A stretch of DNA of 64,000 bases from Salpingoeca rosetta (GCA_033442325.1 JAWQFM010000008.1:1658287-1722286), one strand, 5' to 3'. Positions 48,674 through 54,590 are shown, counted from the stretch's first letter. Numbers and translations are program-made. The notes: a model not told the origin generated them from the sequence alone.

Positions 48674-51600
48674 ATGGCCACAAACGTTGAGGAGGATGAC
48701 GATCTCGTGGTTGTGCTGGATGACGAGGACGAGAGCGACGTTGCCACTCAAGGGCAGCCCGCTGATGACGCTGGTGGTGATGACCCTGACTCGCTTGTGC
48801 TCATCGGCGACGACGACCAAGACGACGACGTCAATGGCAATGATGATGGCAGTGGTGGTGATCACGCACAGGCGCAAGCCACCCAGCAACAACCGCCACA
48901 GGATGGCCAGCAGCAGCCTCCTGCAGTCAAGCCACAACCGCTGCAACCACAGGATGACGACCTGCCAGAGGTGCTTGATCTCGAGGTGCGTCCATGCAGA
49001 TCCCATGACCTGGCGTGTTGTGTATTGTGGTGTATGGTGTGTGTGTGTGTGTGTGTGTGTGTGTGTTGTGTAGTTTGTCTCTTGTTGCGTTGCGTTGTGC
49101 TGTGTGCTGTGTGTTGCGTGTTGCGTGTTGTGCTCCAACGGGCGGTTGCGCTTGCTTGTCCATGTTCAAAGTGCATGTGTGGGAGCACTTTCCCTTGGCG
49201 CCATCTGCCGTCTGACGGCTGAGACTTCACGCAGCCTGGCACGTACTCACTCGTGCACAATCATGTGGGCACGCGTGCCGGTGTATCCACACATACAGCC
49301 CACCACATCAGCAGCAGCCACAACAACGGCAGCATCTGCTGCGGACGAGTCGGAGAATGTGCTGTGTTGCTTGTCTAAGAAGCTGATCCGGCGGCGGCGT
49401 GCCATGCTATTGCCCTGCTGTCACAACATGTGCAGTATCAAGCAGTGGACAGAGCATGTCACAAAGCAAAGCAATGACAGCTCCAAAGGTGCGCGTGTGT
49501 GGATGTGTGTGTGTGTGTGGATGTGTGTGTGTGTGGATGTGCGTGCATGGGCGTGTGAGTGGGTGTGGCGCGTGAGGAATGCTTGTAGATGTGCGTGCAT
49601 GTGTGTGTGTGTTCAGCCACGGCGTGGACGCGGGCTCGTCTCGCCATCTCTCACGGCTGTGCGTGGCTTTCATCTTCTTATTCGTTTTTGCGTGCGTTTG
49701 ACAGTGTGCCCGGCTTGCAGCGCATATGTGCCAGCGTCGCTGCTGCTGAAGCATCTGCCAATGTCAACTTGCGTCGAGATGGCACACGCAGCGGTCGAGA
49801 TGCTCCAGAGACACGTTCGTTGCGATTGCGCTGTAGGGTGGTGGTGGTCTTGGTGGCTTGCAGTGCGTGCTTGTGTGCTTATTGGATTTTTTCCCTCTTG
49901 AACACTACCACCACATCAACCATCGTATCAACACCACCAATATGATCACCAACTCACGCGCTAACACCACCACCGTTTGCCACCACCACTATCGCCACCA
50001 GGGTCGACGGCATGCTGTTAAGGCGCTGTCACTGCCGCGGCTTCAGGCACTGCTGACCACGCTTGCCAAGACGGTCAAGGGGCGACAAGTCCGCAAGCGC
50101 CGCTCATATGCCCGGTCATCACAGGTCACACACAAGGGCAGGAAGACAGCCTGGACCAAGGTGGGGGCTTGATGATACTGATGTTGGAGTGGAGGGGGGG
50201 GGGAGGGTTGTGTCCTGATGGTGGTGTTGATGATGTGCTGCTGGTGGTGATGGTGGTAGTGGTGGTGCTGATGATAGTGTTGATCGTGGTGCTTTTTTTC
50301 TTTGTTTTTTTGATCGCGTTGTGCATGCGTTGGCATGTGGTGGTGTTGAATTGTGACGCCATGTTTCAGTGGTCATGTCGCGAGATCCACCTGTGCCAGT
50401 AGACTGCTTAACACACGATATGTTTTGAACACTCACGTCTCTGACAGGGCGTTGGCTTTGGCGGGTCGTCGGGCACATCTGTTGCGTCGCGGCTGGTAAG
50501 GACATCAAGTTGGATGATATCAGCAAATGCAACATTGCCTCACGTGCACGTTTGCGCGTGTTGCCTCATGTCACGGTATGCTTAAGAATTTAACAAACAA
50601 ACACCCACACACACCCACCCACACACACCCACACACACACACACACCACACACACACACACACCACACACACACACACACACACACACACACACACACAC
50701 ACACACACACACACACACACACACACACACACACACACACACACACACACACACACACACACNNNNNNNNNNNNNNNNNNNNNNNNNNNNNNNNNNNNNN
50801 NNNNNNNNNNNNNNNNNNNNNNNNNNNNNNNNNNNNNNNNNNNNNNNNNNNNNNNNNNNNNNNNNNNNNNNNNNNNNNNNNNNNNNNNNNNNNNNNNNNN
50901 NNNNNNNNNNNNNNNNNNNNNNNNNNNNNNNNNNNNNNNNNNNNNNNNNNNNNNNNNNNNNNNNNNNNNNNNNNNNNNNNNNNNNNNNNNNNNNNNNNNN
51001 NNNNNNNNNNNNNNNNNNNNNNNNNNNNNNNNNNNNNNNNNNNNNNNNNNNNNNNNNNNNNNNNNNNNNNNNNNNNNNNNNNNNNNNNNNNNNNNNNNNN
51101 NNNNNNNNNNNNNNNNNNNNNNNNNNNNNNNNNNNNNNNNNNNNNNNNNNNNNNNNNNNNNNNNNNNNNNNNNNNNNNNNNNNNNNNNNNNNNNNNNNNN
51201 NNNNNNNNNNNNNNNNNNNNNNNNNNNNNNNNNNNNNNNNNNNNNNNNNNNNNNNNNNNNNNNNNNNNNNNNNNNNNNNNNNNNNNNNNNNNNNNNNNNN
51301 NNNNNNNNNNNNNNNNNNNNNNNNNNNNNNNNNNNNNNNNNNNNNNNNNNNNNNNNNNNNNNNNNNNNNNNNNNNNNNNNNNNNNNNNNNNNNNNNNNNN
51401 NNNNNNNNNNNNNNNNNNNNNNNNNNNNNNNNNNNNNNNNNNNNNNNNNNNNNNNNNNNNNNNNNNNNNNNNNNNNNNNNNNNNNNNNNNNNNNNNNNNN
51501 NNNNNNGTGTCAAGTAGACAAATAACGAACCATGAACTTTAACTTGTTTGCAATTCCTACTATATTAGATCCTCACGGGTCTATTACTTGGTTCGTCTTG

Positions 51601-54590
51601 CAGCGAGCGAAGCTAGTATACGGGCCGTCATCGTCGTATGGTCTAGTCGACTTACTCCACTAGCACAACGTACTACGACTTGAGTTAGAGGACCATTCAT
51701 GGCAAGATAATAGCATCTCACAATATGTATCCTTCACGACCACCTATCTCGTAGCCACATGACCATCTATTGACTTCGGATAATGTCGACAGCTCAGTTG
51801 TATTCATCACGTGCTTTATTATCTTTTATAGAGTAGTTTGTTGCTTGCACCTAGGTTTGTTTGTTCTCATTTATGAAATATATAATTATCCATCATAAAG
51901 AGACACGCAAGGCGGGCGCGGAGGGTCTTTGTTTTCTCCTCTCTACACACACACACACACACACACACACACACACACACACACACACACACACACACAC
52001 ACACACACACACACACACACACACACACACACACACACACACACACACACACACATTACATCACATCACAGATTATGACGCGCGCGGATCAGTCGAGCGC
52101 CCCCGATGACGCTGTACGTCGCAGCACACCCACCCACAATGTACCCATGCATGTATACACGCACCTACACACACACACACACTTGCATGCGCACACCCCA
52201 TGCACACCCACCCTCCCTCATGTTCTGCTTGCCTGCATCTGTGGTGCAACACAGGATTCCCACGCCGTGCTGCACAAGTTTGCGCCGCTGCTGTCGCTGT
52301 TGCGTGAGAAGATGCTGGCGCTTCCACCATACATGACGCAAGCACCCACATCCTCATCGTCCACACACACATCCACGTCAGGCTCAACTGCTGCAAAGAC
52401 TCGACAGGACCAATCGCAGGTGCACACACACGCACACACTTGTTAAATGGGCCTGAATGAGTGCTATCGAGACACACACACGCACGCACACATACACACA
52501 CGCACGCACGAACACACGCACGCACGCACACATACTCGCACACTCGCACACGAACACACGCACGCACGCACACATACTCGCACACTCGCACGCTCGCACA
52601 CGAACACACACTGACCTTCGCTTGTTTGCCCCTCCTCCCCCACAACGTCTTGCCCAATCACCACGGCTGCGAACAGAGCGCGAGTGCAGAGGAGAAATAC
52701 GTGGAGGAGCTACGACCACACGCGTTTCGAATGGTGCAGATGGATTACTCGTCCCATCTCTACAAGAGATACATTGATGAGTCTGCAAACGCCAATGTCA
52801 GTCGCCAGCGCATGTCACGCATTTTGAAGGAAGTGGCGTCCCTCACCACCAGCATGCCCGTCCATTTTGCATCCTCCATCTGCGTTCGGGTCGACGAGGT
52901 ACTGTGAACAATGCAATGTTGCTCTGTGTGTGTGTGTGTGTGCGTGTGTGTGTGTGTGTCAATGTTTGATGTGAATGTGTGTGTGTGTGTGTGTGTTTGA
53001 TGTGTTATTGCGTGGAAGTGTATGTGCGTGCCCTTCAACCAACTCAGACACAGCCCGTTCTTGACTAGCCACGTGCATACCGCCTTCTTTCCCTCACACT
53101 GACTGCTCCCTGCTCCCTGCTCACGGTGCAGACGCGCCCCGATGTGATCAAGGCGATGATCACGGGGCCCGAGGACACGCCGTATGCCAACGGGTGCTTC
53201 ATCTTCGACATTTTCCTGCCGCAGCAGTACCCAGCTGTTCCGCCAATGGTTTCGCTCATCACCACAGACGGCGGCCGTGTCCGCTTTGGTTGGTCCACGC
53301 ATGGGTCACGGCATTGTGCACTTGCTTTGACATGGATGTGTTTTGTGTGTGTGTGTGTATGTGTGTTTTGTGTTTGTGATAGGCATGCACTTGTGCACTT
53401 GTACATGTGTGTGTGTGTGTGCGAGCACCTGTTTTCTTCGCCCACGTGTACATGCGCCGTGCAAGTAGCGCACGTTTTGCTTTCAAGCACCACGTCACTC
53501 ACGCATCGACACCCAACCCAAAACCTGTCACCACCACCATCATCATCACCCACTACCATCGCCACCCACTACCATCATCATAATGACAACCATTACACGC
53601 GGCAACCAAGGCCCCAACCTGTACAACACGGGCAAAGTGTGCCTGTCACTGCTTGGAACGTGGTCTGGCCCCGGCTGGGACCCGAAAGTGTGCACGGTGC
53701 TTCAGGTGCTTGTATCCATTCAGTCGCTGATTCTGAACGAGCAGCCCTTTTTCAACGAGCCCGGGTATGAGTTTTCAACGCAGACCCCGGATAGCGAACT
53801 CTACAACACATGCGTCTCCTACCAGGTATTCCTCTGGTCTTACCATACGCGAGCTGTCGTGTGTGTGTGTGAGTGTGTGTGTGTGTGCAAGTGTGTGCAA
53901 GTTTGTGTGTGTGTGTGTGTGTGTGTGTGTGTGTGTGTGTGTGTGTGTGTGTGTGTGTGTGTGTGTGTGTGTGTGTGTGTCGTNNNNNNNNNNNNNNNNN
54001 NNNNNNNNNNNNNNNNNNNNNNNNNNNNNNNNNNNNNNNNNNNNNNNNNNNNNNNNNNNNNNNNNNNNNNNNNNNNNNNNNNNNNNNNNNNNNNNNNNNN
54101 NNNNNNNNNNNNNNNNNNNNNNNNNNNNNNNNNNNNNNNNNNNNNNNNNNNNNNNNNNNNNNNNNNNNNNNNNNNNNNNNNNNNNNNNNNNNNNNNNNNN
54201 NNNNNNNNNNNNNNNNNNNNNNNNNNNNNNNNNNNNNNNNNNNNNNNNNNNNNNNNNNNNNNNNNNNNNNNNNNNNNNNNNNNNNNNNNNNNNNNNNNNN
54301 NNNNNNNNNNNNNNNNNNNNNNNNNNNNNNNNNNNNNNNNNNNNNNNNNNNNNNNNNNNNNNNNNNNNNNNNNNNNNNNNNNNNNNNNNNNNNNNNNNNN
54401 NNNNNNNNNNNNNNNNNNNNNNNNNNNNNNNNNNNNNNNNNNNNNNNNNNNNNNNNNNNNNNNNNNNNNNNNNNNNNNNNNNNNNNNNNNNNNNNNNNNN
54501 NNNNNNNNNNNNNNNNNNNNNNNNNNNNNNNNNNNNNNNNNNNNGCTGGATTCTCTCACGGTTGTCGATGAAACAGTCACGCTCGAGTGA
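48674..54590 (+). CDS. BIRC6-type ubiquitin-conjugating enzyme with N-terminal acidic SIM-like motifs and a degenerate RING/SP-RING; interrupted by two assembly gaps
   Basis: N-terminus [13 protein letters not shown] / [10 protein letters not shown] / LPEVLDLE. Cys-rich [23 protein letters not shown]|GVGFGG (50448) matches the BIRC6 WAKGTGFG motif. UBC: [21 protein letters not shown]|[72 protein letters not shown]. The 3' end at 54590 ([14 protein letters not shown]) is tentative. Confidence 0.85.
50763..51506. other. Assembly gap (N run) directly after a long (CA)n tract
   Basis: Run of n. Confidence 1.
53984..54544. other. Assembly gap (N run) directly after a long (TG)n tract
   Basis: Run of n. 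Confidence 1.

Follow-up and report, generated by a model that had tools for sequence, protein, structure and literature searches.

Do two adjacent 'hypothetical' genes of the choanoflagellate Salpingoeca rosetta encode the two ends of a single enzyme, and what might such an enzyme act on? The question is raised by a locus on the + strand, from 48511 to about 54790, of a 64,000-nucleotide (nt) stretch of DNA (GCA_033442325.1 JAWQFM010000008.1:1658287-1722286; hereafter the window, from whose first letter all positions are counted). An earlier reading of the window's sequence (the original prediction) had placed in one polypeptide a cluster of SUMO-interacting motifs (SIMs), a finger resembling the SP-RING and a BIRC6-type UBC domain, and had proposed an undescribed ubiquitin-conjugating enzyme (E2) and ubiquitin ligase (E3) in one chain that reads SUMO. 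All of the elements it listed were located in their places on the + strand. We find that the two neighboring genes are halves of one gene separated by an assembly gap, that the finger points to a different origin from the one proposed, and that the combination of domains recurs in distant eukaryotes, which gives the idea of a SUMO-targeted E2/E3 comparative backing.

A single gene split by assembly gaps

An exact-sequence look-up identified the upstream half of the locus as public model PTSG_03405 (XP_004995990; UniRef F2U538), a 292-amino-acid (aa) 'RING-type domain-containing protein', and the UBC half carries PTSG_03406, a 270-aa 'UBC core domain-containing protein'. Each of these models has an artefactual end at an assembly gap. 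A search seeded with a longer family member retrieved choanoflagellate orthologues, among them complete single-chain open reading frames in the transcriptomes of Salpingoeca urceolata (P0131, 779 aa), Didymoeca costata (P0145, 809 aa) and Choanoeca perplexa (P0190, 705 aa). Residues 200-259 of P0131 match PTSG_03405 (E 1e-8) and residues 444-689 match PTSG_03406 (E 2e-82), and the D. costata and C. perplexa proteins have the same layout, covering both S. rosetta halves in order. Because complete proteins of three other choanoflagellates (705-809 aa) span both halves collinearly, we read the locus as a single gene. In our searches and fold predictions, the joined sequence was represented only by PTSG_03405, PTSG_03406 and the natural orthologues.

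The RNA agrees with this reading. Reads and contigs from four runs, with two RNA contig sets (X8 and X9), were mapped over 48560-51944 only, and they support an intron-rich gene model on the + strand, the strand to which the stranded raw reads assign the RNA. Both contig sets give the exon junctions 48985/49299, 49488/49705, 49814/50002 and 50160/50448, with exon 3 ending at 49814, and the introns among exons 1-5 are all GT..AG. Contig X8-5 (2763 nt) joins exons 1-5 and then continues for 1781 nt beyond exon 5, and contig X9-12 continues for 1810 nt. The first 30 letters after exon 5 translate in frame as S-K-A-E-K-K-Q-T-A-Q and occur nowhere in the 64-kb window or the 55-Mb assembly. Because the mRNA past exon 5 runs into sequence absent from the assembly, gap 1 must hide coding exons. 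The transcript thus continues in frame past exon 5, without splicing directly to the next exon visible in the assembly. The features of the locus are as follows.

48511-48673 (+): 5′ untranslated region (UTR), start inferred; RNA contig X8 record 5 begins 49 nt before 48560
48674-48985 (+): exon 1, with the start codon and an acidic, disordered 104-aa N-terminus containing three SIM-like motifs
48695-48733 (+): SIM-like motif 1, 13 residues, in exon 1, found by the strict pattern
48788-48817 (+): SIM-like motif 2, 10 residues, in exon 1, found by the strict pattern
48962-48985 (+): SIM-like motif 3, LPEVLDLE, in exon 1, found by the strict pattern
49299-49488 (+): exon 2, first part of the finger, with C127/C128, S130 (ligand 2), C144, H146, C149, K152 (ligand 6) and W154
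49705-49814 (+): exon 3, with C169-P-A-C172 (ligands 7 and 8) and the post-RING1 helix known from RBR ligases
50002-50160 (+): exon 4, with a helix, a K/R-rich stretch resembling a nuclear localization signal and the W-T-K of the BIRC6-type motif (50152-50160)
50448-50495 (+): exon 5, with G-V-G-F-G-G (50448-50465) and 10 further residues; the donor at 50496 is used, and X8 and X9 have loose ends at 50495
50763-51506 (no strand): gap 1, with about 170 hidden codons; the LRNDS-type helical part of the BIRC6-type module is expected here
51604-51663 (+): spurious last exon of PTSG_03405, in the AT-rich piece 51507-51944
52072-52113 (+): 14-codon internal exon, annotated as the start of PTSG_03406, with an AG acceptor at 52070-52071
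52255-52419 (+): exon 6, linker preceding the UBC, in which LPPYMTQ corresponds to LPSYLTQ in S. urceolata
52677-52898 (+): exon 7, start of the UBC, with the BIRC6-type N-terminal extension and the first helix; match to 3ceg, E 1.5e-3
53132-53288 (+): exon 8, UBC core; UQ_con E 7.6e-11
53611-53825 (+): exon 9, UBC core with the catalytic Cys codon (53640-53642); UQ_con E 1.6e-7
53984-54544 (no strand): gap 2, with about 75-80 hidden codons for the C-terminal helices of the UBC
54546-54590 (+): last 14 codons and stop (54588-54590), corresponding to the C-termini of orthologues
54591-54790 (+): 3′ UTR, end estimated from the length of the mRNA contig

The size of the hidden parts can be estimated from the orthologues. 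Residues 260-443 of P0131 have no counterpart in the S. rosetta assembly, from which we estimate that gap 1 conceals some 170 codons; its true length probably exceeds that given in the assembly. The C-termini of the choanoflagellate orthologues, and that of P0021, the closest homologue (a Logan fragment with 60% identity), can be aligned with the 14 codons that precede the stop, and about 75-80 codons for the end of the UBC are missing at gap 2. As to length, 801 nt of visible exons downstream of exon 5, about 510 nt for gap 1 and about 273 nt from exon 9 to the stop together fit within the 1781 nt of contig X8-5, leaving about 200 nt for the 3′ UTR and giving a protein of about 800 aa. A Logan contig that also measures 2763 nt (P0125) was set aside, as it encodes another organism's protein and the equal length is a coincidence.

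The alternative is that the annotation is right and that a small RING-type protein, PTSG_03405, lies beside a separate E2, PTSG_03406. The public models themselves speak for this, as does a possible start codon at 52075, where PTSG_03406 is annotated to begin with a 13-residue 'first exon' (52075-52113). We instead read 52072-52113 as an internal 42-nt exon because of the AG acceptor in front of it and the open frame upstream. At its other end, PTSG_03406 finishes with four residues from beyond gap 2, so that its UBC is truncated. The annotated 3′ end of PTSG_03405, a 19-residue tail encoded at 51604-51663, was rejected, since it is contradicted by the RNA contigs and has zero coverage in the four runs. 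Both models thus finish in artefacts at gaps. Moreover, PTSG_03406 lacks a module that about 80 homologues have upstream of the UBC, and it is PTSG_03405 that holds the first motif of this module; the orthologues, finally, are single chains. We consider the two-gene annotation nearly refuted, with hardly any chance of being correct. One gene of about 800 codons, whose product was divided between two models by assembly and annotation, is very strongly supported by the joined and continuing RNA contigs together with the collinear orthologues, as the original prediction of one polypeptide had anticipated. The two public models should be merged.

Several features of the assembly and reads were noted alongside. 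The AT-rich piece adjoining gap 1 (51507-51944) has zero depth in all four runs, the DNA-like run X1 included, and the 2-kb bin 50001-52000 has a GC content of 0.31 (partly Ns) versus about 0.55 elsewhere. This piece may have entered the scaffold as a misplaced or foreign read; a repeated element was considered and rejected, as the piece is unique in the genome. Long (AC)n/(GT)n runs occur in nearly every intron and in the 3′ UTR (52472-52611, 50593-50762, 51945-52055, which is 111 bases long, 53859-53980 and 54647-54714). Each of the two assembly gaps has such a run at an edge, and the runs probably caused the gaps. At position 49326, 10 of 14 raw RNA reads have G for A, which would replace Thr114 by Ala within a stretch of low complexity, and some raw reads join 48602 to 49311 through 14 foreign letters (48584-48602, 49311-49334) or have loose ends in CAG repeats. 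None of these features appears in the contigs, and they most likely come from reads of another CAG-rich transcript or from a strain difference.

The catalytic half is a BIRC6-type module

The motif by which BIRC6 had been invoked, W-T-K/G-V-G-F-G-G, is split over exons 4 and 5. Its general form, W-x-x-G-[TV]-G-[FY]-G, is present in most of about 110 long homologues, lies 281-455 residues upstream of the catalytic Cys (first hit set), and was absent from reversed-sequence controls. A profile of this pre-UBC module, built from 25 sequences over the motif and the L-R-N-D-S helical region that follows it, matches human BIRC6 at residues 4285-4463 with E 1e-29, which bears out the proposed relationship. 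The link to BIRC6 emerges only with the family profile: phmmer searches against solved structures found nothing with exon 4, exon 6 or the motif region as query. The L-R-N-D-S helical part is seen in the orthologues, and its S. rosetta counterpart would lie within gap 1.

The UBC domain is recognized by Pfam UQ_con in both exon 8 and exon 9 and shares 49-60% identity with family members. Exon 7 aligns end to end with the N-terminal extension of the UBC in the BIRC6 structure 3ceg and in others. The catalytic Cys, said in the original prediction to be retained in an 11-residue stretch, is indeed there, in a G-K-V-C-L-S context. The N-P-N position of the family corresponds to the H-P-N of ordinary E2s; its first residue, Asn in all homologues inspected, is in S. 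rosetta a Gly encoded across the exon 8/9 junction (53288/53611). No BIR domain was found in any visible exon or orthologue, in line with the original prediction, and the traits of BIRC6 proper, a BIR and a giant scaffold, are accordingly lacking in a product whose mRNA is only about 2.8 kb. The genome contains one other BIRC6-type UBC (contig 1, 1280605-1283805), with 59% identity in the catalytic exon. Upstream of the UBC, this second gene encodes a poly-Asp N-terminus, and no finger or W-x-K-G-x-G motif was seen within the 1.5 kb examined.

The finger resembles a decayed RING1

The finger of PTSG_03405 reads C127-C128-L-S130 ... C144-C-H146-x2-C149 ... C169-P-A-C172. A 22-member family alignment puts S130 at ligand 2 and K152 at ligand 6; the absence of these two zinc ligands had been predicted correctly, and the canonical eight-ligand cross-brace is not present. 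Pfam RING models reach only E 0.09-0.4 on the finger (zf-RING_5 0.09, zf-RING_2 0.2), all under their cut-offs, and single exons gave no Pfam finger match because an intron splits the finger. The finger is too diverged for single-sequence searches to recover even its orthologues: on its own it found no relatives among solved structures, a phmmer search with exon 2 against 1.84 billion representatives returned the protein itself and two repeat artefacts only, and a word-index search with residues 105-273 returned only the self match.

The family alignment was more informative. From the orthologues and 20 distant members we derived the consensus C-x2-C ... C-x-H-x2-C-x2-C ... C-P-x(1-3)-C; in many members an IBR-like Cys cluster comes next. 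The orthologue fingers have 7-8 ligands together with this cluster, which is seen in S. urceolata, D. costata, bryophytes and others (the IBR profile gives E 0.015 on the Marchantia member), and the alignment indicates that the IBR part is deleted in S. rosetta. Against solved structures, the family profile matched RING1 of RNF144A (1.3e-5), and HOIP, HOIL-1 and ARIH2 over RING1 plus IBR. An AlphaFold model made with the family alignment (pLDDT, the predicted local distance difference test, 77 overall and about 90 over the finger) aligned best with RING1 domains of RBR ligases, including the helix that follows, and ESM Atlas features and model agree with this. A model made without the alignment (pLDDT 49) was discarded. 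No further Cys-rich domain of the RING2/Rcat type lies between finger and UBC in PTSG_03405 or the orthologues, the part of S. rosetta inside gap 1 being unseen.

These results bear on the suggestion that the finger is an SP-RING of the Siz/PIAS/NSE2 kind, which would bind Ubc9 and couple SUMO ligation to ubiquitin conjugation. Such a finger would explain why ligands 2 and 6 are missing, as they are in SP-RINGs, and the C-x-H-x2-C ... C-P-x-C spacing is similar. The likeness ends with that pattern, however. No zf-MIZ, zf-Nse or U-box match was obtained on the finger at E up to 10, and a six-frame zf-MIZ scan of the genome detected a true PIAS-type SUMO E3 gene (contig 36, 211347-211719, - strand, two exons, 50.6 bits, above the Pfam cut-off) with no match at the finger locus. 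The orthologues' 7-8 ligands and IBR-like cluster do not fit an SP-RING either, and profile and fold both point to RBR RING1, with no PIAS, Siz or NSE2 structure among the best 60 of 141 family-profile matches. We therefore regard an SP-RING as very improbable. A profile comparison of zf-MIZ, RING and U-box, which the original prediction had suggested as a check, thus favors an RBR RING1 over its own SP-RING analogy. From alignment and model we conclude that the finger is, in all likelihood, a decayed RBR-type RING1 that has lost its IBR partner, and that the SP-RING resemblance reflects convergent loss of the same zinc site through that decay.

SIM-like motifs at the N-terminus

We scored SIM-like motifs with a strict pattern, defined as a hydrophobic core with at least three D/E residues on one flank. 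This pattern detects all three of the acid-flanked hydrophobic motifs that had been noticed in the first 104 residues of the S. rosetta protein, and two or more strict motifs arise in 0.12% of shuffled family proteins. Motif 1 is kept at the extreme N-terminus in all four choanoflagellates (S. rosetta, S. urceolata, C. perplexa and D. costata) amid otherwise unalignable sequence. The two or more SIMs that define SUMO-targeted ubiquitin ligases (STUbLs) are thus present in S. rosetta at the level of sequence pattern only.

Similar motifs are found well beyond choanoflagellates. N-terminal SIM-like clusters precede the RING in the red alga Hildenbrandia, the brown alga Ectocarpus, the green algae Trebouxia and Cymbomonas, and several metagenomic members. 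The strict pattern is matched by 14 of 26 members with a finger and by 16 of 59 without one, versus 13% of shuffled sequences, and 17 of the 29 homologues with full tails terminate in [VI][VI]DLT-type strings, the SIM sequences of RNF4 and PIAS. This recurrent but position-fluid pattern looks like that of a functional short linear motif, although it does not in itself point to SUMO binding. The PIAS-type gene on contig 36 implies that a SUMO system is present in S. rosetta.

One group of fingerless members (P0109, P0111, P0084, P0121, P0075, P0064 and P0100; about 490-580 aa) starts at, or at most about 70 residues upstream of, G-T-G-Y-G-G. Several acid-flanked motifs are found in these proteins (VVEI-DDDD, and PETIDLELE in three copies), and VVDLT or IVDLT forms the very C-terminus of most of them. 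To judge from these termini, they look like a SIM-tailed E2 subfamily of diatoms and other protists.

Family distribution and evolution

The combination of SIM-like motifs, RING1(-IBR) and the BIRC6-type module recurs in red, brown and green algae, and bryophytes and gymnosperms have a RING1(-IBR)-UBC fusion without SIM-like motifs. In the open-access literature, we found no paper that mentions PTSG_03405 or PTSG_03406, and none on a SIM-bearing E2 or a RING1-IBR-UBC fusion. The enzyme can therefore still be called undescribed as a design, but it is not a one-off: the S. rosetta protein is a reduced-finger member of a widespread family.

A quick maximum-likelihood tree of the UBC region (85 rows, rooted at the midpoint only) separates two main groups. 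The first, of BIRC6/ubc-17-like sequences, comprises 33 rows, of which one bears a finger. The second comprises 50 rows (97 by the Shimodaira-Hasegawa-like approximate likelihood ratio test, SH-aLRT) and holds 25 of the 27 finger-bearing members; it includes a plant and algal clade and a clade containing choanoflagellates (SH-aLRT 99), where S. rosetta and C. perplexa form a pair. On the well-supported branches, the finger must have been gained or lost six times or more. The simplest reading of this tree would be an old fusion after which the finger was lost repeatedly, although with midpoint rooting only this is not proven.

Proposed function

Our preferred interpretation, which we hold with moderate confidence, is that the S. 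rosetta protein would act as a self-contained, SUMO-aimed, BIRC6-like E2/E3. From its N-terminus, the predicted chain consists of an acidic tail with three SIM-like motifs, a RING-like finger keeping only the second zinc site (C144, H146, C169 and C172), a basic stretch resembling a nuclear localization signal, and the module shared with BIRC6, that is, W-x-K-G-x-G-F-G, a helical part presumed to lie in gap 1, and a UBC with its N-terminal extension and intact Cys. We envisage that the ubiquitin-activating enzyme (E1) charges this hybrid with ubiquitin, that the SIM-like motifs dock it on SUMO-modified, probably nuclear, proteins, and that it could then ubiquitylate these targets without a separate E3, as an E2-borne counterpart of RNF4-type ligases. 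The finger retains L129, W154 and P170 at the usual E2-contact positions. The residue after its last Cys is a Ser in place of the usual Arg/Lys; for this reason the reduced finger probably serves to hold or position a UBC, of the same chain or of a partner, and not as a full activating RING.

A number of points weigh against this interpretation. The link between the RNA contigs and the UBC exons rests on lengths, word shares and orthologues, and about 250 codons lie unseen in the gaps of the reference assembly. The N-P-N triplet of the family is G-P-N in S. rosetta. Foldseek E-values for the finger model are all at least 0.12, and without one zinc site and the IBR the finger may be a relic. 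SIM prediction from sequence yields many false positives, and since bryophyte and gymnosperm members carry the finger and have no SIM-like motifs in the strict-pattern scan, SUMO reading is not a family-wide rule.

Some of these points would be accounted for if the gene and domains are as described but the motifs do not read SUMO and instead bind another partner or fold back onto the protein's own basic stretch, which would leave a general E2/E3 hybrid of the BIRC6/UBC-17 type with a remnant of RING1. The degenerate finger and deleted IBR would fit this view, as would the further reduction of the finger in C. perplexa, the closest relative in the tree, the absence of the motifs from bryophyte and gymnosperm members, the presence of a K/R-rich stretch within the same protein, and the wild-type outcome reported for RNA interference (RNAi) of C. 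elegans ubc-17 (PMC3926112). It would not readily explain why the N-terminal motif is kept in four choanoflagellates inside unalignable sequence, why comparable motifs are found again at the ends of members from red, brown and green algae and of fingerless members, as is typical of a functional short linear motif, or why the strings equal textbook SIMs. We give this alternative a substantial but lesser probability, and consider SUMO targeting by the S. rosetta protein plausible.

Extending the SUMO-aimed interpretation to the whole family, we speculate that it could embody a third, ancient form of SUMO-targeted ubiquitylation and make up a ligase class of its own, 'RING1-IBR-UBC', with a BIRC6-type E2 where RBR ligases have their catalytic RING2. 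In this scheme RING1-IBR would bring in or position a charged E2, whether the UBC of the same chain or a separate one; ubiquitin would pass from the UBC Cys, and the terminal SIMs would direct the enzyme to SUMO conjugates. Such a design would be older than the divergence of opisthokonts, plants and stramenopiles; vertebrates would have lost it, and in the S. rosetta lineage it would be decaying. We think this broader scenario unlikely.

The known SUMO-targeted ubiquitin ligases are all RING E3s and work with a free E2. The locus reveals a conserved, apparently unstudied family whose members combine, in a single chain of 700-900 residues, SIM-type motifs with an RBR-type RING1(-IBR) and the catalytic module of BIRC6. 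Such proteins are small enough for expression and assay, and S. rosetta is genetically tractable. The family could show how a BIRC6-type module acts without a giant scaffold and whether an E2 reads SUMO directly. One paper describes BIRC6 and UBE2O as the only E3-independent E2/E3 hybrids (PMC12818219).

Comparison with known systems

The S. rosetta protein shares with BIRC6 (BRUCE/Apollon), a known E2/E3 hybrid, the pre-UBC motif (W-A-K-G-T-G-F-G in BIRC6), the N-terminal extension of the UBC and the GKVCLS loop; the pre-UBC helical domain, shared by the family, would lie in gap 1. It differs in size (about 800 versus about 4850 aa), in having neither a BIR nor a giant scaffold, in its SIM-like motifs and RING-like finger, both of which BIRC6 lacks, and in its position in the UBC tree, where it belongs to the sister group of BIRC6/ubc-17-like sequences. 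E2s of the C. elegans UBC-17 type ('probable ubiquitin-conjugating enzyme protein 17'; P0180, P0196 and P0200) are mid-sized proteins with the same pre-UBC module and UBC, but the listed animal members have no finger or SIM cluster; ubc-17 itself is known only from RNAi screens, with a wild-type phenotype reported (PMC3926112).

With RBR ligases (HOIP, HOIL-1, RNF144A, RNF216, ARIH1/2 and parkin), the similarity is confined to the N-terminal module, which matches RING1 in the family as a whole and RING1 plus IBR in its longer matches, and the S. rosetta finger model matches RING1 and the following helix. Unlike RBR ligases, the family has no RING2/Rcat, a whole E2 domain lying downstream instead, and S. 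rosetta has also lost the IBR and two zinc ligands. The SP-RING of Siz, PIAS and NSE2 likewise lacks ligands 2 and 6 and keeps one zinc site, but has no profile or fold match to the S. rosetta finger.

A further comparison is with STUbLs (RNF4, Arkadia/RNF111 and Slx5-Slx8), which also place an acid-flanked SIM-type cluster in a disordered N-terminus beside a RING-type finger, and whose IVDLT/VVDLT-type strings are found in relatives of the S. rosetta protein. The S. rosetta finger differs in lacking one zinc site and the linchpin Arg/Lys, and its SIMs are predicted from sequence. Known STUbLs borrow a free E2, whereas the E2 of S. rosetta is in the same chain. The human STUbL RNF111 co-precipitates the related E2 UBE2O (PMC3678163), which we regard as a suggestive parallel only.

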